A DNA stretch of 64,000 nt, taken from the NCBI GenBank assembly GCA_030704615.1, contig CM060731.1, positions 8,060,001 to 8,124,000 on the forward strand. The letters run 5' to 3'. The position numbers and the translations under genes were made by a program. This document shows, piece by piece, positions 6,584 through 62,577 of this stretch. The notes beneath the pieces were generated by a model. The model made no database searches and had not been told where the DNA came from. It worked only from the letters and a program-made list of their open reading frames with translations. Within the stretch, counting starts at the first letter, position 1. Each line of letters begins with the position of its first letter. The stretch is from Takakia lepidozioides. Taxonomy: Eukaryota; Plantae; Bryophyta.

Positions 6584-8905
6584 TTAACCAGTGCCCCCGT
6601 GCGGCTGGGGGGAGCCAAGTGGGGTATTCTCATTGGATGCTCGTTGCTCCTGTAGGAAAGGGTGGCCTGCTGACAGCATCATGAGGGAAGGCATGGGAGC
6701 CCGCTGCCCAAACCTGCCCTGCGTCTGCTGAGAAGCATTGAAGAAAAGAGAGTTAATATGGTTGATTGATGCCCGTCCAGCAAAGTCCCGGGTGTCCAGA
6801 GCAGGCCTTCCTCCAAAATCACCCCTGCCAACGAAGTCCCTAGGGTCGAGCGTCCCCCTTCCACCACCAAAATCTCTTGCATCTAGAGTGTCAGCACTGA
6901 AGTAGGCAGCAGCTCCTGGGTCATCTTTTACCCCTGACGAATCCCTGTCTCTACCATCAGAGGCAGCCTGACCACATGGCAGGAACCCACCAGAAAGCCC
7001 ACCCACAAAAGGGTTCCCAGTTAGGCGGACGCTTGGTGCCCCTTCACTGGAGGCTGGGGAAGCAAAGGGTGAATTTGATATGCATCCAGAGCTGGGGTGC
7101 ATGAGGGTCATAGATGAGCTGTTAGAGTGTTGCCCTGCTCCCATGTGTCGGGGAGATGCAGTGGTAGAACAGTTACCATCCCGTAGATCACCACCATCTG
7201 TCATGATGCCAGCCAAAGTGCAGTTGAATCCTGTCTGTAGGTTCCCACCAGTCGGCAGTATTGTGAGCCTACTACCAGAAGGACCTTGCTGGCGCAGGGA
7301 ATGCTGATGGCTGCTGGATGGCTGTGGAAGGCCCTGCCACACATCACGGTCAACCTGTGTTATGTCAGTATACAACTTCAGACATAGCCTCCAATGCTAT
7401 ATCATCACCCCATAATAAGGATGATGTTGATCAGACTTCCCATAACCTTTGACTCTCGAAGCTTAAAAGTTCAATGTAAAGTAGAAGACAAAACATATTT
7501 CTAGATACTTGGTCACTGTATAAAAAAGTCAGGCCCCCTGGCCCCAGACTTCGAGGAAAATAAGAACCAACAGTCAATACGCACATTTCAGAAACCAACT
7601 TATTCACAACCCTACTTGGCAGATGTAACCAACGTTTACATGTGATCAGACTTGGCCAACGTATTCACCCCACACACATACGACTTGATGTCTAGTGAGA
7701 CTTTCAGGCATTGTTGTTAATGTGATCTCTACTGGCAAAAGGTGAACAACAGTTGGACACATCGCCAATGATATCTTTTGAACAAACAGATACTGTCCTA
7801 ACTTCCGTTTTCCAGGTTACTAGTTTCCTTGGCTCATCTTTCAACCATAAAACGCCCATCATCCCTAGAGAATACAGTCAGGACAGAAGCCCAGTTTTCT
7901 TCCGAGGGATCCGAAAAGGGAGATATAGAGTAATACACCTCGCAAAACCCCATTTTCAAACAAGGCATCTGAGCGGGACAGCTTCCTGGCACAACTACGT
8001 TTGCCACACCATTTCAGATGGCAAGAACCAAGAGTTTTAATTATCATACCGGTGGCATTCCAGCGAATGTTCAATAACCGTAAGACACGATCTTTCAGAC
8101 TGGTGACAGGGATCAACGTCAGTCCTCTTCAGGGTAAGACACTCGAAAGATGATAAGGCTCCAGCACAGAAGCACTGCACGATACTAATAAGGAACAAGA
8201 AGGGAATTGAGTTAGACTCCCGCTCTCATGGCGCTACCTATGGCCAATCACTCTCCATCCTTTCAAGTGTAATACAGGATTCGGGAACCCAGAGGAACTT
8301 CAACCCCACAGCATACTCTCTTACGTTCCTTTGACAGAAACGAAGATGGACACAAGCGCTTGTTAAGCTGAAAGAAACGTGACGTTACAGAAGCTGGTGA
8401 CTTGATTCTCAGAAGTTTGACACTGCGACGCGGTTTCTAGCTGCTTCCCAGACACCGAAGGATAAAGCGAACATCTACGTTTCCCAAATCTGACCTCTCT
8501 GTTTCAGCATTGTCCCCCATTCCCTTTAGCATTGTCAATCCTCCTCCCTTATTTCTGCTTCTCCAGATCTTCCGCACTCACTCTCTCCCATTGTGCACCA
8601 TTCCCATCTACCCGTCCTTCCCTCTCACCCACAACAGGAAGCCCGAGTCTCACCTGCGAGCGATAGGTGTTCCCATCAGCTTCCACAGTCCAGCCCGCCT
8701 CAGCCGCCAGCGCCTTCAGCACATCATTGATATCAGCACGGGGAGGAAGGTTATAGCCCCCATACTTACGAAGCCCAGCAAAGATTTTGGTGGTTATGGC
8801 TCGTCGCTGCCTCTCTCTCAGCTTCGTCTTCTCCTTCTCGCTCGCACTCAGCTTTGCCATGCTGCTGGTCTCCGAGTCCTCCTCCCGAGGCCCCTCTTCC
8901 TGCAT
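6584..8905 (-). CDS. BZR/BES1-family transcription factor, probably non-canonical (type-B-like); about 340 aa, 2 coding exons
   Basis: Exon 8905-8654 encodes the BES1_N domain ([65 protein letters not shown]|gtgag). Exon 7354-6584 (cag|GTT) is in phase 0 and ends ...[22 protein letters not shown]. No beta-amylase domain and no C-terminal LELTL EAR motif. The start could be the second Met (MAKLS). Confidence 0.88.
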
Positions 8906-10149: not shown

Positions 10150-11220
10150 TTTTTTAAAAAGAGAAAAAAAGAGGAAATGAAATGATATAATACATAGAGC
10201 AACAAGAAGAAGAAGAAGTTTCCCTTTTAAACACAATTATAAAACAATTTTAAGAAAGAAGAAGAAGAAGAAGAAGAGAGTAAAGAGGGGAGTAAAGAGA
10301 TCGCCCTGCCTCATCGTGCCTCGTTCCTTTGGATGAACGCCGTGCGTTGTGATCGCCAACCGAAACTCCATCCGCGGTAATAGATCATATTTCCACGGTA
10401 ATATGAAACGTTTCCACGGGAACAAGTACTACATCCACGGTAATAGGAACTACGGTAATGAGGGTATATAATGTATTTTAACTGCGGTAGTATTGCAGTA
10501 TTAATAGCCGTATTAATACTGGTCAACTGGATGCTTCTATCTCCGATGCATCGGACAGTAAATCAGGTTTTACCTCAACGCAAAAGGTTAAATACTGAAG
10601 CAAGTGGGCGGCAGTCCTTCACACGCGCCACCTTAACTCACCCTGGGTCAGGATCTGACCACCAGTCAACGACATCGCCGCCTGCCATTAAACTCGTCAA
10701 TGCTAAGTGAACAGATTAGGGCTGCAATTATTTATTTATTAGCATAATCACTTTGGTTAGGATGCTAATGCAATCTTTGCAATCAAGCGGTCATTAAACA
10801 CGTAGATCTAATGAGGTGTCATGGCATGCTTTCACTTGATCAGGATTACCTACTGATCTACTTGGCTTATCTTCAGCATCATTACTGATTATTCCTTGCC
10901 TCTTTTGGGATGCTTAACTTATTTACTTACCCACAATCATGGGTTGATAATTATAGTGATGAGATCCAGTGACTAGGTAGACTCAAACAAAGAGTTATTA
11001 GTACCACTGAGAGTGGAAATACTAATAATTCCAAATAAAATTTCATCCACGCCCTGTCCCCTGTTTTAAGAAAAATATATAGAAAAAGGAACGTGATTAG
11101 TAATACAAATAAGTTCCCCGCGGCTGGCTTCTTATGGCTTCTTATTCTTATAGCATGAGAATAAATATTACCCCAAATACCTCAAAAGTGAAAGTTGGCT
11201 TTATGGATATGCCAAGTTAA

Positions 11221-11284
11221 TATTTTTGTTATTTTTTTTTCTTAAACACCTGGGAGTGACAGCTCACAAATCAGGCCCCTTAAT
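11221..11284 (-). mobile_element. 5'-truncated 3' end of SINE family 1 (or of its partner LINE)
   Basis: CCTGGGAGTGACAGCTCACAAATCAGGCCC next to a T-rich tract matches the 3' end of the full element at 21257-21501. Confidence 0.65.
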
Positions 11285-11548
11285 TATTGGGAATATTTGA
11301 GAAATTCAAACCTTTGAAAGTCGTTGTTGGATTTGCCCAAGATATTTCAGATTCTTTGGTGATTTTGAAACAACTTTCAAAGAACCGCACCATGTGTTGG
11401 GATGAGCAATTTTTTGTGTTTTCTTCACGTCTTGAACTTTGCTTATGGTTCTATGACTCTAAAAATGTGGTCAGTGTTTTACGGTGTGTTAGATTGCTAA
11501 GAAAGAAAACATAAGATTCTTATTTAAGCGTAACTTATGGAGAAATTT

Positions 11549-15200: not shown

Positions 15201-16744
15201 CCTTAGGGAGAGGCTGGATGAGAGGGACCCCAACAGTTTTCGTGCAGAAGTCATCCCAATCCGATAGCATCTGCGGATGCTATGGAGATTCTCCCAAAGG
15301 TTGAATGTAATGATCGTGGGTTCAATTCCTTTAAGACATGGTGCTTATTTTTCTCCACTAGATTAGTGGTTTGGATGGTGGACTTTGAGATGAAAAGGTG
15401 CCTACGGAGGAGGATTAAATGCACAAAAGTGCTATGAAGCCAAGAAAAATGGATGAAAATTTAGGTTTATCATCCAGAACTGTACAAGTGTTGGAAAATA
15501 TTACTTCAACTTTTAAATCAAGTTGTCGCCTGGTATAGCAGGTTTTCTCTCATTCAGGCAGGCCTGTCTTCAATTTAACCTAATTGGGCACCCCAATGTT
15601 ATAGTTGAGGCCATGATATATCTACTATACCATGTGTACAACATATACTTGGAACATTTTGGAGGCATCTGTACATGTACAACAGAGAGAAGCCGATAAC
15701 ACTCAAGGTCATGGTACTCACATTCAAGGCGACATTTGACAACATTGAAAATCATATACTTGACCACATATGATCACATGAGATCCTATGAGAAGTTAGA
15801 CAAGTCCCAGCTGTGCCCTTCAATTGGAGGAAAGACCTTCTTACAAAGTTACACACTGTGTCTGTTGGCATCAACGGCCTAAGGTTGGTTTCCTTTGGAG
15901 ATAGCTGGCAGGGTCTGTCCCTTGAATACCAAGGCAATTCTCTGGCAGATCTTTACGTGCATGAATTCGATTCTGTCCTTTGTGTATCAACTATCAGCGA
16001 GCTGCTGCCCAATTAGTTTATCATTTCTGATCACACGCAGACGCGTATAGTATGGTTCAAGTTTCCATTTGCATGTGGACGATCGATTTGGCGACGGCAA
16101 ATCCAAAGACGGCGAGGCACAGTAACGGCGCTCGAGTCCCGAGTATCGGTGCTATTAAAAGAGCGACAAGTCTCTGCCCAATTCCCAGGCGCCGCTCGGA
16201 CATTTTGTAAGTATTTGTTTTAGCCTTCTGTTTTGTAGCTGGGAACGCAGGTCGAGGGGTGCCATGCTTCCAACACGTAGCCCACTAGCTATGTTAGTTA
16301 GGGCGCTCTGCGCTAAATTGGGTTTGAGTCCACACATCGATGTAATGTTGCGTTGTCAAAATTGAGTGCTTTTGACTCAACAAGAAATTTGACTCTGGAG
16401 TCTCCTGGGGATAAAGATCACGACAATGGGAATGGCCTTTGGAAACGCGACAGTCCCACCTCTCACGCTATATTATTAGTAGATCCGGTGCCCGTCCTCT
16501 TGGCTGGTGTTTCGATGGATCAACATGCTCCTGAAAATTTTATTGCAATTAGGGAAGTAAGCAAATGGGACTTGACAACGAGTCATATCCTAAACAAGAC
16601 CTGGTAACTGGCGAGCTGTGAGGTTCTCTTCTGACTAGAAGTTTGAGTACGTAGATTCAAAGAGGTAGAGTCAGTTCTCGTCAGTCAGATTCTAAATGAG
16701 TGGGGGCACAGCAGGCAGGTCTGGCGTGTTGTTGATTCCTTTTC

Positions 16745-18079
16745 CCTTGGGTCAAGTTCTAACTTGTACAGTGGGTCCCACACAAAATGATCAAATTCAA
16801 CTACACACCTACCCTCTCTCTCTTGATTGGCAAAACATCGTACAAAGAGGGTCTCTCTGATCTGACAACTTTCTCTGCCTGGATTTGAGGGTCCTTAATT
16901 TGACTACATCTCCCTGGAAAGTGCATCTAGAATCTGGCGGCGCAGTCTTTTAGCTCTAACACTGCCAGCCTACAGCAACCTTATCTGCCCTTCCCCCTTT
17001 CAATGGGGCTGGGATAATGAAAGGGACATCCAATCACCCACAACGGGACAAAAACGTGCCAAGATAGCCAGAAAAGAATGCCTGACCCATGAGCTCTGAT
17101 TTTAGATACTCTAAGGACACCTTTGCACTGTCACTCAGATCTCACATGGCTTCTAAAAACCCCCCACCCTCTCCCCCATTTTTTTTTTAGCTTTTTCTGT
17201 TTTCATTGAGCTACAGCCTCTTATTATAGCAGAAAATATTAGCATTGTACCTAGTCACAATTTTTTTTTGTTTTACACAAATTCTTCAGCTGGCACTGAT
17301 AAAACAAAAAGGCGAAACTGTAGCTTTGCTCAGGTAGATAGTAACGGCTACAGCTTGCCATCGTAACTGCCTGCCTACAAGTACTGCCCTTGCCATCATT
17401 CCACCAAAAATGTTTATGGCTAAACAAGTACTCCCAATATTGGCTAATCAAACACCAACTCACTACCCTCACACAACACCCTCAAATTATTGATCTCGTT
17501 GATTGCTGTGACACTGATAGGCACATTGTTCCATTTAACCCTAGCTATTATTTCCAATATAATTTGATATTTATTAAATACTTATACAAAAAACAAAGAG
17601 AGGGAATTAAAAAACAAAAAAAAGTGCTAGGTATACAATTTATGTGAACAGTGCTCTTGGCCTAATTTTGGCTCACGAACTCCCATATTAGTAAACCCAT
17701 GTTTAGGAAACTGTGATAGCACTCAGTTAGTGACTCTTCACACGAAGCCACTGAATTAGAAACTGTAAGTGACACGTAAGACAGTGCCAGAGAGTAAAAG
17801 TAAATATTGTCTAACGTCCAGTGAATTTACAGAGCCTACTGCTCAACACACAGGCCATCGAGTGCAAGAGAAAGAGAGACTATAGGAGGATGGATGACGA
17901 GTAGTCATCCATCGATTCCCCATCCGTTAGGGCAACTTGCTCATCCACCGGAGCCGGGTCAACGGTCAACGTGTCGACGTATACATACTGTGGCCAGGAA
18001 TAGTACGTACGTACACACAGATGGATCCCGGCCTTTACATGCCCGCCACGTACTTGACACCTTGTGCGACCACACGTGT
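16745..18079. promoter_or_regulatory. Putative cis-regulatory module A (paralogous to module B)
   Basis: Shares 17 collinear exact motifs of 7-20 bp with 20164-22038, including TAACTG/TAACG MYB-like cores, a CCAAT box (ATTGG) and a CACGTG G-box. No shared ORF. Confidence 0.55.
17791..17862 (-). mobile_element. 5'-truncated copy of SINE family 2
   Basis: The reverse complement of 17817-17862 (CTCGATGGCCTGTGTGTTGAGCAGTAGGCTCTGTAAATTCACTGGA) matches 48012-48057 with 2 mismatches. Confidence 0.75.
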
Positions 18080-19349
18080 CCGCGTAGCTAACCACCTACC
18101 GCTGAGCTTAGGGTGGTCCCGAGCTCAAATCTCCAGAGGGTATGGAGCATCCTTCCATAATAAACCACACGAAGTTGTTGGTGGGTGGTATGGAGTATGG
18201 AGGAGTAAATATAAATAATGCGGGGAAGGAAGGGTTCATTATTACGCAAAACGTGTCAGAGTGTAAGAAGATCTTTCCGTGATATTAATAACTAGCCTCA
18301 TCATCGCCTCGCCATCCCATACATTCAGCCCAGACAATCCAACATCAGAATTTAAAGACAAAAAAAGTATAATAAACATAGATAAAAATACTCATAATTA
18401 GACTAATACACAATCTTATACTATTGAATAATTGAAATACCGGAAAATTGGTTTTTCTTGTTTCATCCGCGGAGATAGGGTCTCCTCCACGGTCATAGGA
18501 CGCTGGTGGGGGACAGGTGGTGGCAGCACGCTAGATTCCAGCCCCATCTTTCGCACGTGCCACATTAACTGAGACTGGGGACCCAGTCAACGCCGCCGCC
18601 AGCAGTTAAGGTCTTAAATGGGCTGCTTAGTCAGAGCTGCGGTGGGTAATTAGTGGAGGGACGGGTTAGTAGACACTGGACAGTAAATACTTAAAACTAA
18701 GCGGTCTAGTAATCAGAGGTGTGTTAGGGGTGTTAAGTAGAAAGGGGGAGCATGAGTGATGGGGGTGTTGAGGGTGATGAAGTGGGGTTAAGCACAAGTA
18801 CAAAGGGCTTGCATATCACAGTAAATAAGCCCGACAAGGAGGTCACAAATGAATCATGATGTAGATTACAACCATAATGAGAGTGACAGTACTGCTACCC
18901 AAGCTCTCAATCAGAATGATGACATTTTTATGACTGCCAATCAGCAAAATAAAATGAAAAACATTTGCAGCAACGGCTATGTAGAGGCCAACACTAAGTT
19001 AGTGTATGCTGAACAAGTGTATCCCTCCTTCCCTGTTTCACACCAATTTAGGTTTCCTTGTTCTTTTTTCTTTTCTTTTTTTTCTTTTGGCTTCCTGGTA
19101 ATATAAAATATCATAAAGTTGTCTAGAAAACTAGTCATGTTCTGTCAGTAATAACCTAAATTGAAACTGGAGTTGGGCATCAAACATTTCTAAGTTAGCA
19201 CTAACTGTTTTAAGTGGGGCAGACCCTTATATGGACACTTTGATGAATTTACATACATTTATTCATACCCAGTTGAGAAATGCGATTCATAACCATAATT
19301 TATCTGAGTCCAGCAATGGAAGAGGCTTTGCCAGGCTAGTTATTTAGTA

Positions 19350-19446
19350 TTATAATTGTTGTTATTATTATTTTTCTTATTCTTATTTTTATTTTTTTGA
19401 AAGGGAAACACCTGGGAGCGACAGCTCACAAATCAGGCCCCTTAAT
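19350..19446 (-). mobile_element. 5'-truncated 3' end of SINE family 1
   Basis: CCTGGGAGCGACAGCTCACAAATCAGGCCCCTTAAT preceded by a T-rich tract (an A tail on the minus strand). Confidence 0.65.
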
Positions 19447-19800
19447 AGTGAGAGGATCTTTCACAGTAACCAGTGCCACGGAGGCTGAGAAATGGGACAG
19501 TGACCGCCCAGGTGTTATTATTATTCCTGGGTTTCCACGGAATGACCAAGTTAGCAACTGGTTAAATTTGCTGTGTTGTATATATGCCAGGCAAGGAACA
19601 ATGAACATGCTGTGACAAATTTGCAAGGGGAACACTTAATATTCAGCAAAAGAATTGTACGTTTTGATTAAGAGGTCAACATACCTTCATAACCACAGTC
19701 AATCTTCCTGACACTAAGGACTCTTACTTACATCTGCATGTACCTGGGGTTACATGACAGTCATGACCTACTGAGCTTTCTGTGCTTCTTTACAGACTAC

Positions 19801-19916
19801 CTCAAGAACACAGAAATTTAGATTGGGGAGCTCAAATATTACTTACTGATTAGTAAATCTCAAGAACACAGAAATTTAGATTGGGGAGCTCAAATATTAC
19901 TTACTGATTAGTAAAT
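19801..19916. repeat. Perfect tandem duplication, 58-bp unit
   Basis: CTCAAGAACACAGAAATTTAGATTGGGGAGCTCAAATATTACTTACTGATTAGTAAAT at 19801 and 19859. Confidence 0.95.
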
Positions 19917-20163
19917 TAATCTCGTCGCAAAGTTAGGTTATTCCCATGCCATTTCCGAAAATGACGGAGGTAAAGTCTGCATCAGTAATGACAAAAAACA
20001 TTCTCAGCTGTTGGTTGACATTTTTAAATGTGTAAAGTCTAATTTATTCTCTTGTTAGCTTCCTAGGGCAGTGAGCCCATAAATCATCCTCTCCCTCCTT
20101 TCTTCTGATCGCAACCCCGGGCCCTCATCAGTTCCCTCCATTGCTTTTCCACACTCCAAACTT

Positions 20164-22038
20164 CCTTGGGCTCAGTTGCTAAGACAATATAAGACTGTGA
20201 TCTGACAAGAGGTAGCACAGTTATGTGAGCCTGGATTTGAGGGTCCTTTGTTTGTAGGCAGCTGCCAGACTTCTCCCTGGAAAGCTGCTAGTTCATGGAA
20301 TCTGCAGGCAGCAAAGAGCTCAGAGCTCATCAGAGCTCAGGACTCATGTGAAGATATATTTTTGTTTAAGAAGGGCCTGACCCACCAGCCAATTATCAGC
20401 ATCGTTGTGGCGTCGGCGTGCGCAAACTACCTACCCTCTTCTTGCCATGACTCCCTTTTGAAACTCCTGTCTTTCAATATCATTTCCAATCAAAGAGTTG
20501 TGGTGTTGTGCAGACAAGTACAGAGAACATGAAGGAGGTGACACAAGGGTGGGGCAAGACTCTGTGTGTTCCCAGTGTTGTGATAACAGTAACGTCCACA
20601 GGCTGTCACTGTAACTGACAACTTGTACTGCTGCAGGCTTCTTGTGATATTCACCAAAAAATTTGTGATTGTTGATTGGCTGTAGCTGCCCATCAAGAGC
20701 TTTCCACCTTACACAATTTGCCCACTTCTACTATGTTTTGTTTTTCCAAGGCTCAAGCTATTTGAAGCTATCTGTTGTATTTTACTATTACTTTATTTTT
20801 ACTTCAATTTTTACAAGAACCTCTAGTAATTTTTAGACTCTGGATTGTAATGAAACTGCTTAAGATTGGGTTGTCAAGCATCAAGGTGTCTCTACAGACA
20901 TGCAGCTCCACCATTGCAAGTGGCAATACCAAGACGGGGACATCTTTATCATGTTGGTCACATTTTTAGGGTTCATTTCATCTATGGCACGGCTCTACAG
21001 AAGGTGCCCAGAAGGTTGAGTTTGTGATTGAATGTGTGGGAAGATTGAATTATGCTACCGACATGATTCGTCATCATGAGTATGTAACACAAGTCCTTTT
21101 CTTGCAAGATTTCACATAGATAGGGTGAGCTTCATAACTCAGCATCCAAAGGACAGTATGCTGTTAAGTAGATAGATAATCTTTGGCAACACTGAGAAAC
21201 TCAAAAACTTAAACTCAGTTAACTTACACGCAGTAAAAGTGGGTCATTTGTCATTTTTTATTTTTTATTTTTTTTTAATAAAAAAGGAAACCTGGGAGCG
21301 ACTGCTCACAATTCAGGCCCTTGAGGAGGGGGAAAAATTAACCCCCTTTCAGATAAGCCATTAGGCACCCAGGTGGGAAACGTCACCACCAGACCAGCCG
21401 GTCACGAACAATCCACACACCAGGCAGGGCAGCGGGTTTGAACCCCGAACCACCAAGGCGACACACTGTGCACTTACCAGCTGAGCTACCAGCTGATGTG
21501 CTTGTCATTTCCCTTTCTGAAAAAAACTCCTACACCCCAATGTTTCTGAATAAATGAAACATATCTCCATTTGTTTCCATTAGAAAAATAAATTATAAGT
21601 AGAAAAGAAAAGAAAAGAAAAAATGATATTTTAGGGGTTCTCCCATGATGTCCCCCTGCTTTAATGGTGTAAAAAACAAATCTAGTGCATGATATGGGGC
21701 CTGAACAAACGAGTAAAATATATGAATAGAGAGAGACGTGCAGTAAAGGAAGGTGATGATTAACTAACCGTCCATATTAAATAACGGCTGAGAATCTGCT
21801 CTGCTATTGGCTGCCACCTTTTCTTTTCTCTTGTATGTCCTTTTTCCTCCTCATCGTCCTCAGGCCATGGATGAATGAACGTGGTGAGTACAGTGATGGA
21901 AGGAAGGATGTAGAAAGGAAATCATCCATCCATAAGGGTCAAAGGGAGGTCCATATACATACGGTAGCGCGTACGTATAGGAATGGGGGCCAGTACCAGA
22001 ACGCCACGCACGAAAACCTCACGTGGGTTCGCACGTGT
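20164..22038. promoter_or_regulatory. Putative cis-regulatory module B (paralogous to module A)
   Basis: Same ordered motif series as 16745-18079, for example GCCTGGATTTGAGGGTCCTT at 20229-20248 and TCTCCCTGGAAAG at 20272-20284. Confidence 0.55.
21257..21501 (-). mobile_element. Full-length tRNA-derived SINE (family 1)
   Basis: Minus strand has Pol III A-box TAGCTCAGCTGG (21488-21477), B-box GGTTCAAACCC (21444-21434) and an A-rich tail. A 9-bp TSD TTGTCATTT lies at 21248-21256 and 21502-21510. Confidence 0.88.
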
Positions 22039-24630
22039 GGGAGTTATGAGAGTGAAAATCAGTGCTGAGCTCTGTTACCCACCAGCGGTTAAGGGACTGC
22101 AGTGCAGCAACAATGTTGGGAGCAAATATTCTTTACAAGATTTGTAGGCTGACACTAGATAATCTCTCTTGTCAATGAAGCAGTGTGGGGCCTGTTCTTG
22201 TCTGAGTTGCAGAGTGTTGTTGTTGTTGTTGTGATGAAGCAAGAAGAATGGAGCCCACAAAAACAGCAAACAGTGTGAAAGTTGGGGGAGATCACAGTTT
22301 TGACTTGGCATCTTGTGTGAGGAACAAATGTTTAGGGAGGTTGGCAGTTCTACAGAAGTTGATCCTCTGATCATATGTACAGACAGTTCTATCATTCGTC
22401 TTCGCCTCAACTTAATACTTCTGGTTGGAATTGGCCCCGGTGATCCGGGGAAAACCAGTAGCTGCAAGATCCACCAAGCGGCAGCTGAGAAATGAAATGA
22501 AATGAAATGGTACTTCAAAGAAAGTGCATTGGAATGGACTCGGAAGGAATCGACAGTGACAATAGAAGGTGCATGCATGCACAGTAGCTGGTACTAGATC
22601 ACTCGAAGAATACAAGCTTCTCTTCTTGTTGGGCTTTGAGTACTTGTGTTAGGTGGCTGTTCATGCCGGAGCTCCTCTAGCCCCTCCCCTGGTTCAGCAG
22701 ATGGTAGAGCTCAAGTTCAACAACCCGAAAAACCTTGTTTTTTGGGTGTCCAGCCAGAAGTCCGTAGAAAGCAATAAAAAAAGAGTAAAGAGGTCTCAAT
22801 AGTACAATTAGAAAGGTATTACACCTTCAATTCCTTCACCTTACAGAAGGCTCTAATTGCATAAAAGAAGGGAAGCACCGCTTTGTAAGATGAATGACAA
22901 CAGATACCCACTATCCTAATCTGTCTCCCATGGGAACGCAAAACAAATGGCTGGCTTACAATTGAGCTTGCAGAGCTTGAAAGGCAATCTAATATTACAG
23001 CCGTGTTATGAGCTCCATTAATGCAAACCCATGCTGCTTCTCATCAAACTTCTTTCAGATGCTGCAGGCCCACAGACAGAGAGAGAGTCTGACCTAGCTG
23101 AAAATGCTGAAGAGCTGTTGGAGATCCTCCATAATTGCTTCAAATCCCACACATCTGGTTGAGCTTTCCTATTATTCGACAGGGCGTGCCCATCTTGGAC
23201 TGTTCCCTGTATAACGACATATGTTCTACACTTCAGCATGGAATAGACACTGGACCTGTACGCCTGAGCGCAGATCAGACCCAATAATACTTCAGGACTT
23301 AACATTTGACATCCTCCTGACACGTGATCATATGTGGAGTGACATACACAATCAGAAAACAGACAAGTACAGCTACAATGAGAAGAAAATCTGTTTCAAC
23401 TATCACTGCTATGAGACCATTATATCCAGTTCTCAAGAATCAAGAGAAAACCACAAGCCTACTGAGAGGAGCTTTCAGGCCATTCACATACAACTGGTTT
23501 TCCTCACAGGAATTCTTCTCACCACAACCCCAAGGGTCAACTAGCTGCCTTGAAACATGTGCTGAGCAAGAGACATGGCAGAACTACTCATTTAGGAAGG
23601 ATTTAGACTTATAGATCACTGGGATCGGTCTAAGCCACAGAGTAGTATCTCTGTCTCCCATTCCTTTCAAGCAAAACTGAGTGCATGCTCATGACCATGA
23701 GGCTATTGAGTATATTTCTCTTTTCCACTAACCCCTTCCCATCTCGGAAACCTCTAGTAAGATCAAAGAATTGCTTGGAGCAATTACATATGATGTCACT
23801 GCACCTGCACTGTTGTGCTAGTAGAAACGTTTGGTCTTGTGGTGGCAAAGTTGAGAATCCTCCCAGATATTCACCAAGTTTTCCCCACTCGCGAAGGCGT
23901 GTTCGTAAGTTGTCCACTCCAACAAGTTTGCCAGAGAAAAAGGCTGGGTCAAGCCACCAACAGGCGAACTGATGATGTCCCTTCCTCCTCCTTACTACCT
24001 TGCCCTCGCTGCTCGTAGAGGAGTAGAGGCTATTTGATGCTGACAAACACCCCAGTTTTCTGTGACAAGTCAAGGCCTCAACAACATTCAATGAGTGTTC
24101 ACTTCCCTATCCACAATTACGAAATGTTCTGACACAGCACATTTCCACCTGACTGCCATTTTCTGCACTATGCCTCCCATTTCCTCAGGACATCACATTC
24201 CCATCCTCAGTCGACAGCTAAGGCGACAAGTGCCTACAGCCAGGCATAAATCATTTTCCTTCACCTTTTATAGTGCCAACAATGCTACTTAGTATGTAAT
24301 ATTTATTTCCAGACAGAAACGCAAAAGCGTACTTTTTTGAGCTCCAGGATACCACAGATGACTAGGCACAGTTCTTCTTCAACATCATGCTGGGCATGGG
24401 GAGACCCTGAGAGGGAATTAACAATCTAGCACTTGCCTCTGCAAGGTACAATGACTGCAAGAGGCGCTGCCCATTTTAAACAAAGTATTGATGTTGCAAC
24501 TCCAATACTATCTGTCTGGCCAACGTGAAAGGTCTAGCAGATGCGAAGTAGCCAAAAAACACATTATTCGAACAAGATAGCAACTACACACCTTTCTTCT
24601 GAACACCCTTGCATAAATGCCCAACAAATT

Positions 24631-30886: not shown

Positions 30887-33800
30887 AGGTAGTTACACCC
30901 AAATGTGAGCATTTAAGCAGTGGGGCCCACTCAAAGGGTGCAGTTACAACCAAAATTACACGAGAAAATTAGCAATTCAACAATGAGTTTGTGATATCAA
31001 TTGTAAAATTTTGGAATGAGTTGGCTAATTAATATGAATCATCAAAGTCTGTGTACACATCATCCCAAATCTGAGCGGTAGAGGGGGCTATAAAGGACAA
31101 AAGTTGATACTAAAAAAGATTGTGCATGTGGCATGTCATGCACGAGTTATGCACCTAAACTTAACTCCATTGACAAGCTATCACAGCCCATAAAGACACC
31201 TCAAAGCCTGGCCCACTAAAGCAAAAGGGGTATCCTATGGTGTTGAAACCAATTAAAGTGTCTGACATTAATGAGGCTTGGTCAGCCCAAATTCAACTCC
31301 AAAATGTGTCAAACTGAAATTCGTCTCAATGAAAATGTGAGCAGGCGGAGAGGTAATATAAATTTGCCCATGGTGTCGCTCACACCAAGTCCTTCCCTAA
31401 TCTGTCATTTTGTGCACCCAGGTATCTCCTCGATTGGCCGACAACAGCTCTCGTCCTCCCGCCATTTTCATGGTAGTCTTCTTATGTGTTGCTCCTCCTT
31501 CCCACCACCATGGCCCGCTGCTACAAACCTTTTACTCCATTGCAGGTGGTCCCACTCTTGATTGATGCGCCCATGGGGGAGAGATGAGGGTGAAACTGCT
31601 ACTGTCTTCACCACGCTACTTGGCCCGACGTTTGGCTATGGCCATTTTTTAATTGTGCTTGCACACCGCTGGAGCCCACCCGCAGAAAGGGGGGACCCGT
31701 GCACCTGGTGGAGATGGAATGTTGTTTTTAATGGCTGCATGTAGTTTATCTCCTGCCTCTGCACAGGCCTTCGCTGACCAACGCATGTCGAAGGCTTTCT
31801 TGGCCTGACGTTCCTCAACGCGGGCCCGCTTAGCCTCAGCTTGAGTGGTTTTTTTTTCTACACTTTGGTTTTGGCTGCAAGGGCCTCCTCTTTCTTCCGC
31901 TCACGAGCTTTAATGGCCTCCTCTTTTAGTCTAGTTTTTTGTTCCAGAGATGCTAAGTATACATCTGATGTCATGATTATTGACTTGCTATAATCTACGA
32001 TGGGATCGTTGGCATTCAATCTGACCCTCCTGTTTGTATGTGCAGGTGCCTCTGATAGCGTAAGGAAGCGCAAGATTGAGCTTGGCCTTGGCAGGGATGG
32101 CTGGCCCACCACCAGCGAGGAGTCATCGTCGACCTCCAGGGCTCCTGACTCGCCCCCACTGCCTCCTCTTCATCGTCGCCGACGTCATTGGGCTGATCTT
32201 GGTCGTCCCCATCGTCAACCACCACAAAGTAGTGTGTTGGTCTTCGGTTGTATCCGACACACAAGTACCCAATATCTCTTCCACGTGCAGCTCTGAAACC
32301 AGGTCTTCTTCCTCTGGTTCTGGAGTGGTAGGATGCATGGGGTCTGTGCAGGTCTGCTCTTCTGTTTGGTTTGAGAAACACTCAGATGGGCCCATTTTCC
32401 CCACCATAGCTTCAGAATTGAGTGGCGAAATGCATGTAGTCTTGAACCCCTTTGCAATGTTGTGGGGGGTCAGTTCCTTCTTCAAGGCACGTGAGACCCA
32501 TTGGGCCAGATCTTCCTTGAGAGCTCCTCTACCCTTGTGAGCTATGTTCCACATATCTCCGTACTTCCGGAAAGCTGTCTTGAATGGCTTGAACACAACC
32601 ACATCAAGAGGCTAGAGTGCATGGGAAGTGCGGGAAGGAAGTGTAATCACGTCCAGTCCTACTGATCTAGCTTATTTGACAACATCTATAGTGACATGCG
32701 AGTTATGACCATCCAAGATTAGCAAGTGCCTATTTGTGACCGAGATGTCATTGCCCATTGCCTTTGCTGACTCCAAGAAATGTGAGATCCATTTGTGAAA
32801 TAATATTGATGTCATCCATGCCTTCCTTTGCATTGCCATTGTAGCACCAGATTCGCATTTGTGAATGTAATTACGACGAAATCTTTTACCTTTGAAAATG
32901 TAGAAGTTCGGAATATAACTTCCTGCAGCGTTCATGCAGGTGAGGACACTCAACCATTCGCGTTGATCTGGCGTTATCGAATGGACAGCTCTTGAACCAA
33001 CCTTGGCAAGCACAACAACACCTCCATTTCGCCCAGCTTTGGCCCCTGACTCGTTGGGCCCCATAGTTATGCTTGTTGTACATTTTTGTCAAGTTAGCAT
33101 AGAATGTTTGAACATTTTCAGGACATAGTCCCTTGACTCTTCCACTCTCAAGTCCTTGAGCTACTCTGAGACTTAGGTGTGGATGTCTAGACCTGAACCA
33201 TCTCACCCACCCCCAGCCAGGGATCCCTTGTGTGAAAGGTGTGAGCCGTTCTTGAGTAACTTCTGCTATCTTGAGACGGAGTTAGGTCAGTGTTAATGGG
33301 TGACCAATATCTTGCATTTTTTCAATGTACTTCACTAGTTCATCTTCCTCATTGGCATCTAGCATTCCCTTGTTACCTCTCTTCTTTGTCGTAGTAACTC
33401 CATACCAATGGTTTCGTAGACTAGTTGCAGGTACCCCAAACATCCGTGCCGCAGATCTGATGCCGTCCCCACGATCAACAGCTGACATGGCTCCTTGGAG
33501 CTGCACATCAGTCCAGTTCCCGTTTTTATGTGGACGTGGTCCTCTTCTTGGTCGCCCTCCCGTCCTAGCAAGAACGTCTTCATTACTCTCCACATTGAAA
33601 TTAGCTGGATCTGATGGTCTTTTTGTTGCATGTGTAGTTGTATCGATCATCACTTCAGGTGGAAACTCTTTTGCAGATCCATGACCAACTTGAAATTCAA
33701 CATTGGAATCCTGCCCTTGGCCCCATTGATAATATTGATCACTCTCGTCTTCACTTTGACTGCCCTCATTTGCTGCATGTTCACAACGAGTGCATGAATT

Positions 33801-33898
33801 GAATGCAGTGTCTCCATTTAAGGGGTGCATGAACCCACTTTATGGCCCAAAAATAGGGGTCCATTTCAAGACCCGCTCATATTTGGGTGTAACTACCT
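30887..33898 (-). mobile_element. pogo-type Tc1/mariner-group DNA transposon (3012 bp)
   Basis: 24-bp TIR AGGTAGTTACACCCAAATGTGAGC / GCTCATATTTGGGTGTAACTACCT (1 mismatch), TA on both sides (30885-30886 and 33899-33900), and internal transposase remnants. Confidence 0.95.
31858..33830 (-). pseudogene. Disrupted pogo transposase (psq-like HTH, CENP-B-like HTH, DDE_1), DD35D spacing
   Basis: WTDVQLQGAMSAVDRGDGIRSAARMFGVPATSLR; EEDELVKYIEKMQDIGHPLT; GWGWVRWFRSRHPHLSLR; LLILDGHNSH with 35 codons to the D of PLDVVVFKPFK. Stops at 33282, 32672 and 32612, plus a deletion/frameshift at the first catalytic Asp (about 33060). Confidence 0.92.
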
Positions 33899-45625: not shown

Positions 45626-47757
45626 AATGGAGAAGACTACTCTTACCCAACGAGTTGAATGCAAGCGTGGGAGCTTTGCCGGTACGGTCGCCGAGGATGG
45701 CCGTTTGGGGGGGGGGGGGGGGGGCGCTGTCAAATCCCCAACCCCCCCCCCCTCTCCCTTCTCACCTCCAAGCCTGTAGTCTAGGATAAATAATTAAAAA
45801 ATCAGTGGCTTGGCATGAAGCTGGTAGTTTGGTAGCTAGGTGATATGCGGTGTAGTGGCGAGGTCCGTCGCAGTCCACGCAAGCTGAGTGATTGGTTGCA
45901 CATGAGACTAATTATTGGATTTTTTCATCTCCAAGAGAATTCTAAGTCCAAGATCCTCGCTCCCGATCCCGGCCTGTTCCTAGTGTCCGCTCCTCTATCC
46001 CGTCCTTGTTCCCAAGCCCGTTCCCCCATCCCTGTCCCTTGCCCGCGCTCCCCTCCTCGCCATGTGGAACGTCGCTCGTTCCCCTGTTCCCGGTCCATGC
46101 TCCCCTCCTAGCCTGTGGAATGCGGCTCGTTCCCCTGTTCCCGTCTTCGCTCCCCTCCTCGCCCCATGGAATGCAGCTCGTTCCCCTGTTCCCAATCCTC
46201 GCTCCCCTCCTCGCCCCATGGAATGCAACTCGTTCCCCTGTTCCCAGTCCTCGCTCCCCTCCTCGCCCTGTGGAATACGGCTTGCTCCCTTGTTCCCAGT
46301 CTCCGCTCCCCTCCGCCTCCCCTGTCCCAATGGGGAGCAAGGATCGAGGAGCGGGAACAGGGGAGCGAAGAGGGGAGCGGGGACTGGGAACAAGGGAGCA
46401 AAACTGGAGATTGTTTGGGAACATGGTACTAAAGGTGGGGAGCATGAGGAGGGAACAGGAGGTGTGGAGCGCTCCCCACCTTCCCAATGGGAGATGAGAT
46501 TTGACTAGTAGTTAGCAGCTCGGGGCAGCGGGTCCCACCACCTCACACACTTGCCTTAAACTCCTTGGATAAGCGTAGTCCTCGCCCACATCAATATTGC
46601 ATTATTGATACCACCATGGTATCCAAATCTTAGATTTTACCAATACTAGTGTCCCCGGTGACAACCAAGTTGTAGCCCAGTGGAAATGAATATAGTAGAA
46701 CTGAAGGGATGAATATGAAGGGAACTGAATATGATAGAACTGAAGGGATCATTTTGAAGGGAACTGAATATGATAGAACTGAAGGGATCATTCTGAAGGG
46801 AACTAAATATGATAGAACTAAGGGATAAATCGGAAGGGAACTGAATATGATATAACTGAAGGGTTAAATCGGAAGGGATAATTCCGAAGGGATTTCAATA
46901 TGATAGAACTGAAGGGATAAATTGGAAGGGAACTGACTATGATAGAACGAAAGGGATAATTCCAAAGGGAACTGAATATGATAGAACTGAAGGGAACTGA
47001 TATGATGGAACTCAAGGGATAATTCGGAAGGAAACTGATATGATACAACTGAAGGGATAATTCGGAAGGGAACTGATATGATACAGTTGAAGGTATAATT
47101 GTTCCCTCCTCATGCTTCCCACCTTTAAGACCGTGTTCCCAAGTTTGTTTCCCATAGTGGGACAGGGGAGCGAGGAGGGGAGCGGGGACCGGGAATAGGG
47201 GAGCAAGCCACGTTCCACATGATGAGGAGGGGAGCGGCGACCGGGAGCAGGGGATTCCACATGGCGGGGAGAGGAGCGGGGACTAGAAACAAGGGAGCAA
47301 ACCGCATTCCATAGGGCGAGGACAGGAGCGGGGACAAGAGACAAGGATGGGGGAGCAGGACTGGGAACAAGGAAGGGACAGAGGAGCAAATATTGGGAAC
47401 AGGGAGCGAGCAAGGATCTTGGACTTCGAATTATTTTGTAGATGAAAAAACAATTAATTAGTCACATGTGCAACCAATTATTCAATGCACTTTGACCGCC
47501 ACGATAAGAACATGAGACCCCGTCATTGTAACACATATCACCTAGCCACCATACTACCATCCACCTCTTGCCAAAATCTTGATTTTGAAGGATTTAATCC
47601 ACAATAGAGGCTCGCAGGTGAGAGGGGAGCAACAGCGGGTGGGGATTTGACAGCACGCCCTGCCAAGACGTCGCCGGTACGGCCATCCCGGGCGACCGTA
47701 CCGGCAAGGCTCCCGCGCTTGCATTCAACTCGTTGCGTAACTGTAGTCTTCTCCATT
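45626..47757. mobile_element. Foldback-like element with long imperfect inverted arms (45626-46457 and 47100-47757)
   Basis: AATGGAGAAGACTAC...AACGAGTTGAATGCAAGCG.GGGAGC.TTGCCGGTACGGTCGCC is mirrored at the right end. Similarity continues inward to AAAGGTGGG.AGCATGAGGAGGGAACA. The arms contain about 52-bp subrepeats (TCGCTCCCCTCCTCGCCCCATGGAATGC...). No TSD recognised. Confidence 0.8.
46697..47092. repeat. Minisatellite of GAACTGAATATGATAGAACTGAAGGGAT(A/C)-type units (about 38 bp, roughly 10 degenerate copies)
   Basis: Directly visible repeated units in the spacer of the foldback element. Confidence 0.9.
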
Positions 47758-47907: not shown

Positions 47908-48087
47908 GAGCATGTAGCCTAGTGGTTGGGTGTTTGTGCCTTGCCTGTGCATAACCTAGGTGATCCTGGGTTCAATCCTTCAACATGTGCCTTCAGACCG
48001 TCCATTGGGCCCTCGATGGCATGTGTGTTGAGCAGTAGGCTCCGTAAATTCACTGGAAGTTAAAGAAACTTTATCTTATCTTTTATC
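47908..48087 (+). mobile_element. tRNA-derived SINE (family 2) with a (TTTATC)-type tail
   Basis: A-box TAGCCTAGTGG (47915-47925) and B-box GGGTTCAATCC (47968-47978). The 3' body is shared with 17817-17862 and the tail resembles 13801-13838. Confidence 0.75.
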
Positions 48088-58904: not shown

Positions 58905-60645
58905 GTGCGGGATGGAGGCTTTGGAGACCTATGAGCAAATGATGGGGGAAGGGATGAAGCCCGACCACATCACGTTTGTATGTGTTTGCAGTGCGTGTGC
59001 TGGAAAAGGGCAAAGAGGTGCATGGTTGCATCGCTAAAGCTGGAATTGTACATACTAAACCATACCCTCGTGGACATGTATGCCAAATGTGGGAGCATTG
59101 AGGATGCGGAGGGAGTGTTCAACAATATGCCTGAACGACGTCGCGTGACAGGTGGTGTGCTTGAAGTGTTCGAGATTCAACAATGCTTGCTAGAGGAAGA
59201 GTTGTCATGCATCTCTATTCAAAAACAATGTAGTGAGGGCACCTTCTTCTTAGACCCTATATCAGCCTGTTTTGCCCTCTCATCAGACTCCGCCCTGAGA
59301 TGCATATTGAATTTTGTTAGTTAGCTCGTTAGCTCGGAGCAGGGATAGAGTGTGGGTCCAGATTCATCCAAGAGGCCAGATTTCAAGCACAAGAGTACCT
59401 GTGATTCCATGTGGATCGATAGCTACAAGAAACCTGCATGGATAGATGGTCAACTGGAAGCCGCAGAAGCAGCGGCACAATTGATAAAATCAAGCATTGC
59501 TAATCAAGGCACCTTCTTCAACACATTTCACCCAATTTTTCCCTCACAACAGGAAAGCAGCCAAAAACAGGTAACAGAGATGAGGAGAAGCTGTGGAATG
59601 AATACTTTTCTGACCACATAACGTTTGTGTGCGTATGCAAGCCTGGCAGCCCTGGAAAATGGCAAAGAGGTCCATGGTTGCATCGTCAAAGCTGGAAATG
59701 TACCAAATGTAATTCTGAACAATACCCTTGTGGACATGTATGCCAAATGTGGAGGGAGTGTTCAACAATATGGCTGAATCTGCCTGTTTTGCCCTCTCAT
59801 CAGACTCGGCCCTGAGATGCATATTGAATTCTGTAAGTTAGCTCGTTGGGTGTATCTGTGGTGGTTAGGAGTGACTTTGACAAGTTACTGCCGATGTGGC
59901 AGCAGGAAAGTATCCAAAAACAGATAACATAGATGAGGAGAAGCTTGTTGACGTTTGTTTGCATTTGCAATGTGTGTGCAAGCATGGCAGCCCTGGAAAG
60001 GTGCAATGAGGTCCATGGTAACATCGTCAAAGCTGATTTGTACCAGATGTCATCCTAAACACAGCCCTGCTGGACATGTATGTCAAATGTAAGTGCATCG
60101 AGGATGCAAAGGGAGTTTTCGACAGTATGGCTGAAAGAAATGTGGTGTCGTGGAGGGCGATGATGGCAGGATATGCACAGCAAGGGGCAGGATGGAGGCT
60201 TCGGAGACCTATGAGCAAATGATGGGGGAAGAGGTGAGCCCAACATTTGTTTGCATTTGCAATGCGTGTGCAAGCCTGGCAGCTCTGGAAAGGTGCAAAG
60301 TGGTCCATGGTGACATCGTCACATCTGGAATTGCACCCAATGTCATTCTGAACACTGCCCTGCTGGACATGTATGTCAAATGTGAGTGCATCGAGTGTGT
60401 GCATTTGCAATGCGTGTGCAAGCCTGGCAGCTTTGGAAATGTGCAGTGAGGTCCATGCATGTGACATCATCAAAGCTGGATTTGTACCAGATGTCATCCT
60501 GAACACTACCCTGCTGGACATGTATGTCAAATGTGAGTGCATCGAGGATGCAAAGGGAGTGTTCGACAGTATGGCTGAAAGAAATGTGGTGTCGTGGAGT
60601 GCGATGATTGCAGGATTTGCACAGTAAGGGGCGGGATGGAGGCTT
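58905..60645 (+). pseudogene. Fragmented PLS-class PPR repeats
   Basis: Repeated TFVCICNACASLAALE...VHGDIV..G..PNVILNTALLDMYVKC..IEDAKGVFDSMAERNVVSWSAMIAG motifs with deletions, frameshifts, a stop (about 60625) and interleaved non-PPR sequence. Confidence 0.9.
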
Positions 60646-62574
60646 CACTACAACAGATGAGTGTTTTTATGACTGCAAATATGACTATTTTTTCAGTCCT
60701 ATATGCGTTCATGACTACATCACTCTATAGTGAAAAAAACCCTATCATAGCGACTAGTCTTTAGGACTGCATTTTGCAAGTCATAGCCGTGACTGCGTGC
60801 GTGGCACCTGGAGTCATGCATAAGAGAGTGATGTAGTTACAACTCTATGACTTACATACGACTAACTATATGACTACATTGTCTGATGAGCGTTACCTAC
60901 ATGGAGAGGGTTTAGATGAACACGTGCACCACTGCGCAAGCGACACGTCACGATACCTGTTGCACTTCAGATGTGACATGTGGCACTTAGACATAATATA
61001 TGACTAGCATATATGGCAGGGTTTATGCCACGTGTCATCAAGAATGTCTCTGAAAATAATTTAATAGTTATATTTGTAATTTTAAATTCTTAAATTTATA
61101 TTTTATTTTTGAAAACAGGGGATAGCAGCTTGGAATTTTTTATTAAATGGTATTATTGTTTAATTTAATAATGTTATATAAAATAAAAATAGATTAAATG
61201 ATTTAAATTCTTCATTATGTGGTGAAATTCTGATATAAAAACAGAATGGACCCCTCTTGCATACTAGCAACCACAAAGACATTCAAATAGACAAGTACAG
61301 GGAAATACACGCCCTGTAAATTATATTACAAAAATCCAAATGAGACCAATGTCCCAATGGACACCTCAAAGGCCACAAGGTCCAAAAATCCATGCCTGAA
61401 AAGTCCAGTAAGCAAAAAATAAGCAAGCCCACACATGGGCTGAATTGTTGTAATACTAGTTTGTTCTGGTGCTACTAGAATCAAGGACCCTGTTAAACAG
61501 TGCAATACTTACGGCCGATTTGATAAGAGGGAGAAACAGGGTGAAATGTGTTGAAGAAGGTGCCTTCATTAACAGTGCCTGATTTGATCAATTGTGCCGC
61601 TGCTGCTGCGGCTTCCAGTTGACCATCTACCCATGCAGGTTTCTTGTACCTATCCTTCCACAGGGAATCATAGGTAATATGGAGCTTGAAATCCGGCCCT
61701 CTTGGATGAATGTGGACCCACACATCTATCTCTGCTCCTTCAGCTATCCATGCCCCTGCACAAAATCATGCATATATCCTCGCATTGCTGCTAGCAGCTG
61801 ACAATGACAGCCAACTTCTATGACCCAAACCCAGAGTGAGCACAATGGCTTTGTAAGGCCAATGCCTACAGGGCATATTCAATACTACAATGACGATACG
61901 CAAGCAGCAGATACCATGTGCAAATAAAAAAACAATAAAGGTGGTGAAAGTGCGCAACCTGCCAAAGAGAGGGCGGAGTTGAGGAAGGATGAAGCAACTA
62001 CAGACATTGCGAAATGCTCTGGTGCGGGCAGAAGGGAAGACCCAGGCCCTGTCGGGGTTCAGCTGGCAAAAGAACAAGCTGCTGACAGCAACAACATGGA
62101 AGCAGAGTGGATACAAGTTGATTTTGACAAACCTGAGTCCATCAGACAAGGCATTAGAAGGCCCAAACAAAGAACACTGTCTAAAATATGTAATAACATG
62201 AGACACAGTCGTCACACACTAACCCAACATGGGTCTTGGCGAACTTTCAGCAAAGCTGAAACAATCACAGAAGCAAAAAAAGGGGCAGGACCTCAAGGGA
62301 AGATGTATAGAGTATCTTTTGCATTGATCAATGAGTACGTGGAAGAAGGAGAAGCTTACCCATTGCCAAGCACGGAGTACATGATGCAACCAACAGCACA
62401 AATATCATGTCAGTTCACTCATAATGAGCTGGAGGCACTGGATGAGTTGGACGAGATATACCATATAAGTGATCACACTCCAATAAGACTACAACAACAC
62501 CCCACATCAACATGTTGACACGGGGAAGTGCAAAGAAGGCCAAAATAGGGGATGGGATGCCTATTCTTGCTTGT
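60646..62574. mobile_element. CACTA (EnSpm) element, one clear end, inserted in the PPR array
   Basis: PPR sequence breaks at GGAGGCTT|CACTACAACAG, followed by many subterminal ATGACTA/ATGACTG repeats (60668-61010). PPR sequence resumes at about 62578. No intact TAGTG right end or 3-bp TSD was found, so the right boundary is approximate. Confidence 0.65.
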
Positions 62575-62577
62575 AGG

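Follow-up and report, generated by a model that had tools for sequence, protein, structure and literature searches.

Two diverged non-coding modules upstream of a moss BES1/BZR1 gene: an old local duplication with a candidate regulatory island

Introduction

Shadow, or redundant, enhancers are a feature of animal developmental genes. Redundant cis-regulatory modules have also been described in plants, SHATTERPROOF2 and the tomato CRM deletions being among the reviewed cases (PMC8824567). What defines a classical shadow enhancer is overlapping activity, usually with no detectable homology, whereas the two modules described here, A and B, are known by homology alone. The likeness to shadow or redundant enhancers lies in the presence of two separate non-coding modules with the same motif order at one transcription-factor locus, and in the third conserved block, which in both copies has the appearance of a regulatory island. 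To our knowledge validated distal enhancers are few in bryophytes, and plant redundant enhancer pairs with a duplication origin that is still readable in the sequence have rarely been documented. Mosses permit precise deletions, which makes functional tests practical.

The modules were analysed in a window of 64,000 nucleotides of Takakia lepidozioides DNA, where they sit 8-13 kb upstream of a BES1/BZR1 gene. On present evidence they are an ordinary old intergenic duplication with one suggestive island, the value of which is that of a candidate and not of a result. If block 3 proved to be active and BZR-bound in both copies, the locus would become a test case for the retention or loss of duplicated regulatory DNA and would also address BZR autoregulation in a lineage whose brassinosteroid signalling is still under study.

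The BZR Gene and Its Upstream Region

The preliminary description of this DNA placed the modules 5' of a BZR gene in a gene-free stretch, and both statements hold. The two exon ORFs (Table 1) were searched separately and never joined; exon 1 matches the BES1_N domain with an E-value of 5.9e-34, and exon 2 shares 64% identity with the BZR of Physcomitrium patens. Recognisable coding sequence is absent between 9.3 and 32 kb. A coding reading of A and B gets no support, as the Pfam search of local ORFs gave no matches and no conserved ORF or other peptide-level conservation was found between the two modules. The Rfam scan of 9-32 kb returned nothing with E below 0.3, its three weak matches all lying outside the modules, and no tRNA was found in A or B.

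No non-coding match was found at distant moss BZR loci, the exons of which share 59-82% nucleotide identity; in the protein collection searched, no relative exceeded 70% identity over exon 2 of BZR. The 20-mer common to A and B and a two-part core pattern were absent from the metagenome contigs searched, and the contigs of two small putative RNA runs cover the SINE pieces and nothing else on A or B.

Table 1. Positions of the modules, their conserved blocks, the neighbouring gene, and inserted repeats within the window
Feature	Position	Strand	Description
BES1/BZR1 gene	6584..8905	-	exon-1 ORF 8549-8905, exon-2 ORF 6584-7375
Module A	16745..18125	+	duplication copy 1; non-coding, single copy except inserted SINE fragment; depth about 55
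Block 1 of A	16855..16944	+	partner 20195-20313; best-conserved island; CpG-poor
10-mer patch GCCTGACCCA	17074..17094	+	partner 20368-20389
Block 2 of A	17337..17445	+	partner 20585-20681; weakest island
High-copy repeat fragment in A's long spacer	17801..17865		88% match to 48009-48073, minus strand
Block 3 of A	17905..18125	+	partner 21922-22072; CpG-rich island
5'-truncated tail, SINE family of B's insertion	19370..19475	-	within the non-homologous 2 kb separating the modules
Module B	20164..22072	+	duplication copy 2; depth 53-58 outside SINE
Block 1 of B	20195..20313	+	partner 16855-16944
Block 2 of B	20585..20681	+	partner 17337-17445
Full tRNA-derived SINE in B's long spacer	21246..21501	-	depth 39,000-68,000
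Block 3 of B	21922..22072	+	partner 17905-18125; CpG-rich island
CGCACGTGTG, perfect BIL1/BZR1-binding 10-mer	22030..22039		in B's block 3; the window's only one

Homology of the Two Modules

All 17 motifs reported earlier as collinear between A and B are exact at both of their positions. Their number alone proves nothing, since chains from shuffled pairs had a mean of 19 anchors and a maximum of 24; the homology signal consists of long anchors clustered on narrow diagonals. When exact matches of at least 7 nt were chained collinearly, the best chain comprised 239 bases compared with 141±14 in dinucleotide shuffles (maximum 176). After removal of low-complexity anchors it was 226 against 124±16 in 300 real genomic segment pairs (maximum 174), and with block 1 taken out it was 168 against 109±14.5 (maximum 149), while reversed and reverse-complement control chains scored 135-140. 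Just two sites each were found in the 64-kb window for the 20-mer, the 13-mer, the 11-mer, the 10-mer, three 9-mers, and the 8-mer, with no third site for the 20-mer even when 3 mismatches were allowed. Within the window the sole strong partner of A is B, on the same strand, and no third copy of either module was found there.

Local alignment of A against B with controls, as suggested in the preliminary description, revealed islands of about 65-70% identity, and blocks 1 and 2 gave Smith-Waterman scores above the control maxima. Block 1, which contains the 11-mer, the 20-mer, the 13-mer, and GAATCTG, reached a chain z of 9.2 and a Smith-Waterman score of 33.5 (control maximum 18), its alignment A1 having a mean column identity of 75% with indels of 12, 11, and 5 nt. 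The GCCTGACCCA 10-mer patch gave a local score of 12.5 (P 0.01, 500 genomic controls). In block 2 there were 27/40 ungapped matches at an offset of 3248 and a Smith-Waterman score of 22.5, higher than all 400 controls (maximum 20.5), with a marginal chain z of 2.0 (P 0.017), while block 3 reached a chain z of 7.5. The leftmost motif CCTTGGG was not significant alone (P 0.13). No homology was detected in the long spacer, in the 2 kb separating A and B, in either outer flank, or between the tails of A and B. Block 2 was aligned as A2 and block 3 as A3.

The sequence comparison makes an old duplication, as proposed earlier, a well-supported origin of the pair: with same-strand homology beyond controls, in direct orientation and at an A-to-B offset of 3.3-4.0 kb, A and B derive from non-coding DNA that was duplicated locally, once and long ago. 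This ancient event of tandem type copied roughly 1.4 kb of single-copy non-coding DNA. Neutral simulations put the divergence of the copies since then at roughly 0.4-0.6 substitutions per site, to which many indels are added, and SINEs were inserted independently into each of them. What remains alignable is three or four islands with about 65-70% identity, and the 17 motifs are identical runs inside them. Module B is longer than A because of its 1.2-kb spacer, which holds the full SINE.

Block 3 as a Candidate Regulatory Island

The CpG observed/expected ratio of block 3 is 1.19 in A and 0.99 in B compared with 0.51 for the window. It falls to 0.18-0.46 in the adjacent spacers, in the SINE, and in the DNA that separates the modules, and to 0-0.39 in blocks 1 and 2, which are CpG-poor like their surroundings; CpG richness serves here as a proxy only for methylation state. 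Both copies of block 3 have W-box, ACGT-core, and G-box motifs in common, all of them motif matches only. In A there are 6 ACGT cores within 106 nt (120 in the whole 64 kb), two tandem W-boxes (GGTCAACGGTCAAC), the element TATACATAC common to both copies, and, at the end of the block, a G-box with the left half of a BZR1 site (18071-18080). Block 3 of B carries a single W-box, ACGT cores, and G-boxes at 22020 and 22032. G-boxes are generic plant elements.

The perfect 10-bp BBS for BIL1/BZR1 is C[G/A]CACGTG[C/T]G (PMC12668046). The last common motif of B is such a perfect site, while the homologous site of A is a left half-site; in the 64-kb window there is 1 match against 0.02 expected from shuffles, an observation that is post hoc because it was made after the G-box was seen. 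In this respect the modules resemble BZR1/BES1 targets, whose elements (BRRE CGTG[C/T]G, G-box, and the perfect BBS) come from the promoters of genes that brassinosteroid represses in Arabidopsis, the moss site being matched by motif only.

The CpG-rich G-box island common to both copies looks regulatory and is regarded as a candidate. Block 3 has stayed CpG-rich twice amid CpG-poor DNA and is packed with ACGT cores, W-boxes, and a terminal G-box/BRRE; its most likely nature is therefore that of an unmethylated cis-regulatory island which both copies have kept. As a distal enhancer, or as a promoter of a cryptic or alternative kind, it could be bound by bHLH, bZIP, WRKY, or BZR-type factors, and BZR might in this way feed back on its own gene. 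Blocks 1 and 2 may simply be remnants that decay slowly. The reading of A and B as ancient duplication products with islands kept, block 3 being a cis-regulatory island in both copies, is given a probability of about 0.45, that is, slightly under even. The label of shadow enhancers is a reasonable hypothesis for such a pair. The more specific proposal, in which tandem duplication would have given rise to a retained pair of distal shadow enhancers and moss BZR, together with G-box and W-box factors, would autoregulate BZR through the G-box/BRRE island, is a long shot.

Neutral Decay and Alternative Origins

Purifying selection at the level of motifs, claimed earlier for this pair, was not upheld: the motifs are identical runs in alignments of about 65-70% identity, and selection is not required because neutral decay alone nearly reproduces the pattern. 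Uniform neutral decay gave a chain of 214±62 at K about 0.4 against the observed 226, and simulated BLAST at K about 0.6 gave 11% coverage and 63 bits against the observed 10% and 62 bits, while a 20-mer appeared in 3-7% of neutral runs. These figures agree with a purely neutral relic, namely, junk intergenic DNA that was duplicated locally long ago and is becoming unalignable, with the islands as functionless stochastic survivors, and so do the CpG-poor blocks 1 and 2 with their resemblance to the surroundings and the lack of transcript contigs on A and B in the two putative RNA runs, SINE pieces aside. A neutrally decaying tandem or segmental duplication would likewise be direct and single copy, with 65-70% islands, later independent SINEs, and near-neutral statistics. 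However, the joint pattern of chain and coverage was obtained in 0-5% of neutral runs per parameter set, no single set fitting both in more than 5%, which in these simulations is mild evidence of rate heterogeneity. Moreover, a CpG ratio near 1 in both copies of block 3 amid surroundings of 0.2-0.5 is unexpected for long-methylated neutral DNA of such divergence, and, unlike in a plain tandem duplication, no homology is detectable between the 2 kb after A and the DNA after B. A functionless relic is considered unlikely, without being far-fetched.

A transposon origin, with A and B as the two LTRs of a very old non-autonomous LTR retroelement or as neighbouring copies of an extinct low-copy family, is improbable. 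The arrangement itself is reminiscent of a LARD/TRIM-like LTR pair, since two direct repeats, 1.4-1.9 kb long, lie on either side of a short non-coding interior of 2 kb of unrelated sequence, the outer flanks and the two tails are without homology, and a TG...CA pair flanked by a 5-bp repeat was found at 16730...22033. Nevertheless, TG...CA/TSD candidates are at chance level (2 found, 0.78 expected), and the "TSD" of the 16730...22033 candidate belongs to the common CACGTGT motif. There is no primer-binding site (the best match has 4-6 mismatches of 12), no polypurine tract (11/12 purines) in either orientation, and no gag, pol, or any Pfam match in the internal ORFs at E up to 1, although a non-autonomous element would lack gag/pol remnants anyway; the CpG-rich block 3 is also unlike a silenced LTR. 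All blocks are at a single-contig depth of 53-58 in the source genome's DNA at a likeness of at least 80%, and further copies are absent at this level from the genome as well as from the window, so that the high-copy decayed transposon family considered in the preliminary description does not account for them; the search relied on likeness of at least 80% and exact words, both of which diverged copies of 60-75% identity would escape.

It was also considered that block 3 could be the core promoter of unannotated duplicated transcription units, either a non-coding RNA or alternative distal BZR first exons, with a G-box followed by a TATA-like GTATGTATA on the minus strand towards BZR. Block 3 does resemble a plant proximal promoter (CpG island, ACGT/G-box cluster), the TATA-like motif is common to both copies at a distance of 60-90 nt, and the SINE insertions lie just "downstream" of the block in both. 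Such a promoter is nonetheless very unlikely, given that the contigs of the two putative RNA runs miss A and B outside the SINE pieces, that neither a conserved ORF nor a known RNA family was recognised, and that blocks 1 and 2 have no stable or common fold. The structured RNA suggested earlier, which would be encoded by block 1 with GCCTGGATTT pairing with the GAATCTG segment, was rejected and has hardly any credibility: a short imperfect pairing is merely possible, whereas neither strand of either copy has a fold energy different from that of shuffles (z +0.43, -0.10, +0.43, and +0.61), the predicted folds differ between A and B, the segment that would form the stem contains the 12-, 11-, and 5-nt indels, and there is no Rfam match.

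Inserted SINEs

The SINE insertion described earlier in the long spacer of each module is real, with depths of 37,000-68,000 compared with about 55 in the flanking DNA. Over all bins with SINE pieces the summed contig depth is 37,000-81,000 against the same flanking value, the bin 17682-17878, which holds the repeat fragment of A, reaching 37,071. The insertion in B is recognised as a tRNA-derived SINE by its high copy number, by the pol III A box and B box read directly in the sequence at about 21420-21495 on the minus strand, and by a poly-A tail, seen as a T-run at 21254-21290 on the forward read; ARAGORN made no tRNA call on it, as expected for a SINE. The tail of this SINE matches 19370-19453 and 11217-11298, and the bin that holds the truncated copy between the modules has a summed depth of 81,420.

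Homology of the two modules

The two non-coding modules A (16745-18125) and B (20164-22072) had been described preliminarily as sharing 17 collinear motifs, and all of these were found exact at both positions (17/17), the 8 motifs of at least 8 nt having no further occurrence in the window. The motif count is no evidence by itself, since shuffled sequences form collinear chains of 19 anchors (exact matches of 7 nt or more) on average and of up to 24; two segments of 1.3 and 1.9 kb are expected to share about 150 7-mers by chance alone. The excess over chance lies in how long the anchors are and in how they gather on narrow diagonals. The best chain amounted to 239 bases with all anchors (shuffles 141±14) and to 226 with low-complexity sequence removed (300 real genomic pairs: 124±16, maximum 174), while reversed and reverse-complement partners gave 135-140; without block 1 the chain was 168 against a control of 109±14.5 (maximum 149). 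Each module has the other as its sole strong match, and this holds for the same strand only. No third copy or tandem array was found in the window, and a pair at 22459/25574 (27/40 matches) resembles chance on reading.

The homology is restricted to islands, separated by spacers (see table). The leftmost motif alone is not significant (P 0.13), no homology was detected in the long spacer (z 0.2), in the 2 kb between the modules or in the flanks outside them (all z <=1.4), and none extends to the A-tail/B-tail or pre-A/pre-B flanks.

Features of the window and of the modules (positions in A / B for the islands)
Feature	Position	Strand	Statistic or remark
Block 1	16855-16944 / 20195-20313		z 9.2; mean column identity 75%
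10-mer patch	17074-17094 / 20368-20389		P 0.01
Block 2	17337-17445 / 20585-20681		chain P 0.017; Smith-Waterman score exceeds all 400 controls
Block 3	17905-18125 / 21922-22072		z 7.5
58-nt tandem duplication	19801-19916		two head-to-tail copies, 100% identical
SINE	21257-21501	minus	pol III A and B boxes, poly-A tail
Further SINE copies	11217-11298; 48009-48073
BZR, BES1_N ORF	8549-8905	minus	E 5.9e-34 (Pfam)
BZR, exon-2 ORF	6584-7375		best 70% (Logan contig), 64% (Physcomitrium patens)
DDE_1 (pogo/Tc5-like) transposase relic	32123-33830	minus	DDE_1 match only in 32672-33064 (E 7e-12)
ACT-repeat (ACR) gene	37.8-39.6 kb
Overlapping repetitive ORFs	45940-47420	both	Gly/Arg/Glu-rich or Pro/Ser-rich
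PPR-like ORF fragments	58980-63575	both	E/DYW-type

These statistics, together with the single-copy depth at >=80% likeness, give good support to the view that A and B arose when a stretch of single-copy non-coding DNA was duplicated locally long ago. From the divergence and from moss substitution rates, the age of this duplication would presumably be some tens of millions of years. The perfect tandem duplication in the non-homologous stretch between the modules is evidently very recent relative to this event.

Copy number and SINE insertions

When contigs of the source sample were placed on 16500-22400 at >=80% likeness, the block-holding bins were without exception at single-contig depth (52.9-57.8). 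A high-copy decayed transposon family, the main refuting condition named beforehand, is thus contradicted at >=80% likeness, copies at 60-75% elsewhere in the genome being below detection. Depths of 37,000-81,000 were confined to three stretches of SINE material (17682-17878, 19258-19454, and 21228-21621), the second falling to a shoulder of 757 over the adjoining bin 19455-19651. The depth, and the pol III boxes and poly-A tail of the B element, confirm the reported SINE insertions in both modules; the other two stretches hold fragments, with further copies at 11217-11298 and 48009-48073, and one of them, a third insertion, sits between A and B. In two small runs of this species that are putatively RNA, contigs fall on SINE pieces only. 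B's spacer (20347-20564, 20792-21007) is matched with 0-1 differences by low-depth contigs of a run that bears the label "plant metagenome", and therefore the same moss species is present in that sample.

The BZR gene and its surroundings

The BES1_N domain and the matches of the exon-2 ORF to BES1/BZR1 proteins, obtained with the two exons queried separately and not joined, place the BZR transcription-factor gene on the minus strand, with A and B lying 5' of its start codon at a distance of 7.8-13.1 kb. The region had been called gene-free, which is borne out as far as protein domains tell, with a credible Pfam match in 0/20 ORFs taken from the stretch 9.3-32 kb. The next recognisable features beyond are the transposase relic at 32-34 kb, broken into several ORFs, and the ACR gene. 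Farther on, long ORFs with highly repetitive translations overlap on both strands, which suggests a tandem-repeat array and not genes, and several ORF fragments whose translations, judged by eye, are like pentatricopeptide-repeat proteins may represent clustered PPR genes or pseudogenes.

Alternative explanations

The layout, with one repeat on either side of a 2-kb unique core, is suggestive of A and B as the LTRs of one element; however, a primer-binding site, a polypurine tract, and an internal coding remnant are all absent, and TG...CA/TSD candidates are no more than chance. A coding origin was rejected, as Pfam found nothing in the 20 local ORFs, the six-frame comparison of A with B yields only the peptide implied by the 20-mer of block 1, and the A/B indels are not multiples of three. 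The structured RNA proposed for block 1 was also dismissed: on either strand of either copy the fold energy is no different from that of shuffles, and A and B fold differently. No credible RNA family or tRNA came out of an Rfam E-value scan of 9-32 kb or of ARAGORN.

The claim of motif-level purifying selection was compared with neutral decay by simulation, in which real window segments were duplicated and both copies evolved with substitutions and indels. The observed chain score is equalled at K of about 0.4 (214±62), and the observed BLAST picture (2 HSPs, 10% coverage, 62 bits) at K of about 0.6. A chain of >=200 jointly with coverage of <=15% occurred in 0-5% of runs per completed parameter set, the neutral parameter space being covered only in part, and a 20-mer appeared in 3-7% of neutral runs. 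The low frequency of the joint pattern hints mildly at slower evolution of the islands relative to the remainder and is no proof of motif-level purifying selection. Three moss BZR loci (a Physcomitrium patens chromosome, a Logan contig, and an ENA contig) aligned in exons only and are too distant to inform, a sensitive chain test and a fuzzy motif search at them being likewise negative, and the core was not found in metagenome contigs in two scans.

Block 3 as a candidate regulatory island

The reading as duplicated "shadow" enhancers is plausible for block 3 alone, which by its CpG and motif content is a candidate enhancer; the likelihood of a neutral relic is almost as high. In A as in B, block 3 forms a small island rich in CpG, with CpG observed/expected of 1.19 and 0.99 versus 0.51 for the window, blocks 1 and 2 being CpG-poor and the spacers, SINE, and stretch between modules ranging within 0.18-0.46. 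Methylated CpG decays fast, yet block 3 is CpG-rich, which argues that, ever since the duplication, it may have remained unmethylated in A and B alike.

Plants are known to possess redundant cis-regulatory modules (PMC8824567), and therefore an enhancer pair, if true, would add to a known phenomenon. ACGT cores number 6 in 106 nt of A's block 3 versus 120 across 64 kb, and block 3 also has W-boxes, TATACATAC common to both copies, and a terminal G-box. The terminal motif of B, CGCACGTGTG, perfectly matches the BIL1/BZR1-binding 10-mer as defined in PMC12668046 and is its single occurrence in the window versus 0.02 expected; the homologous site of A has the left half-site only. Because this motif was sought only after the G-box had been seen, it is taken as a lead and not as a test. 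Left half-sites occur at 18071, 18552, and 22030, three in the window. The second belongs to a G-box with the left half BZR1 site (C[G/A]CACGTG, 18552-18559), the surroundings of which have no counterpart after B and which lies about 0.45 kb past A's block 3.
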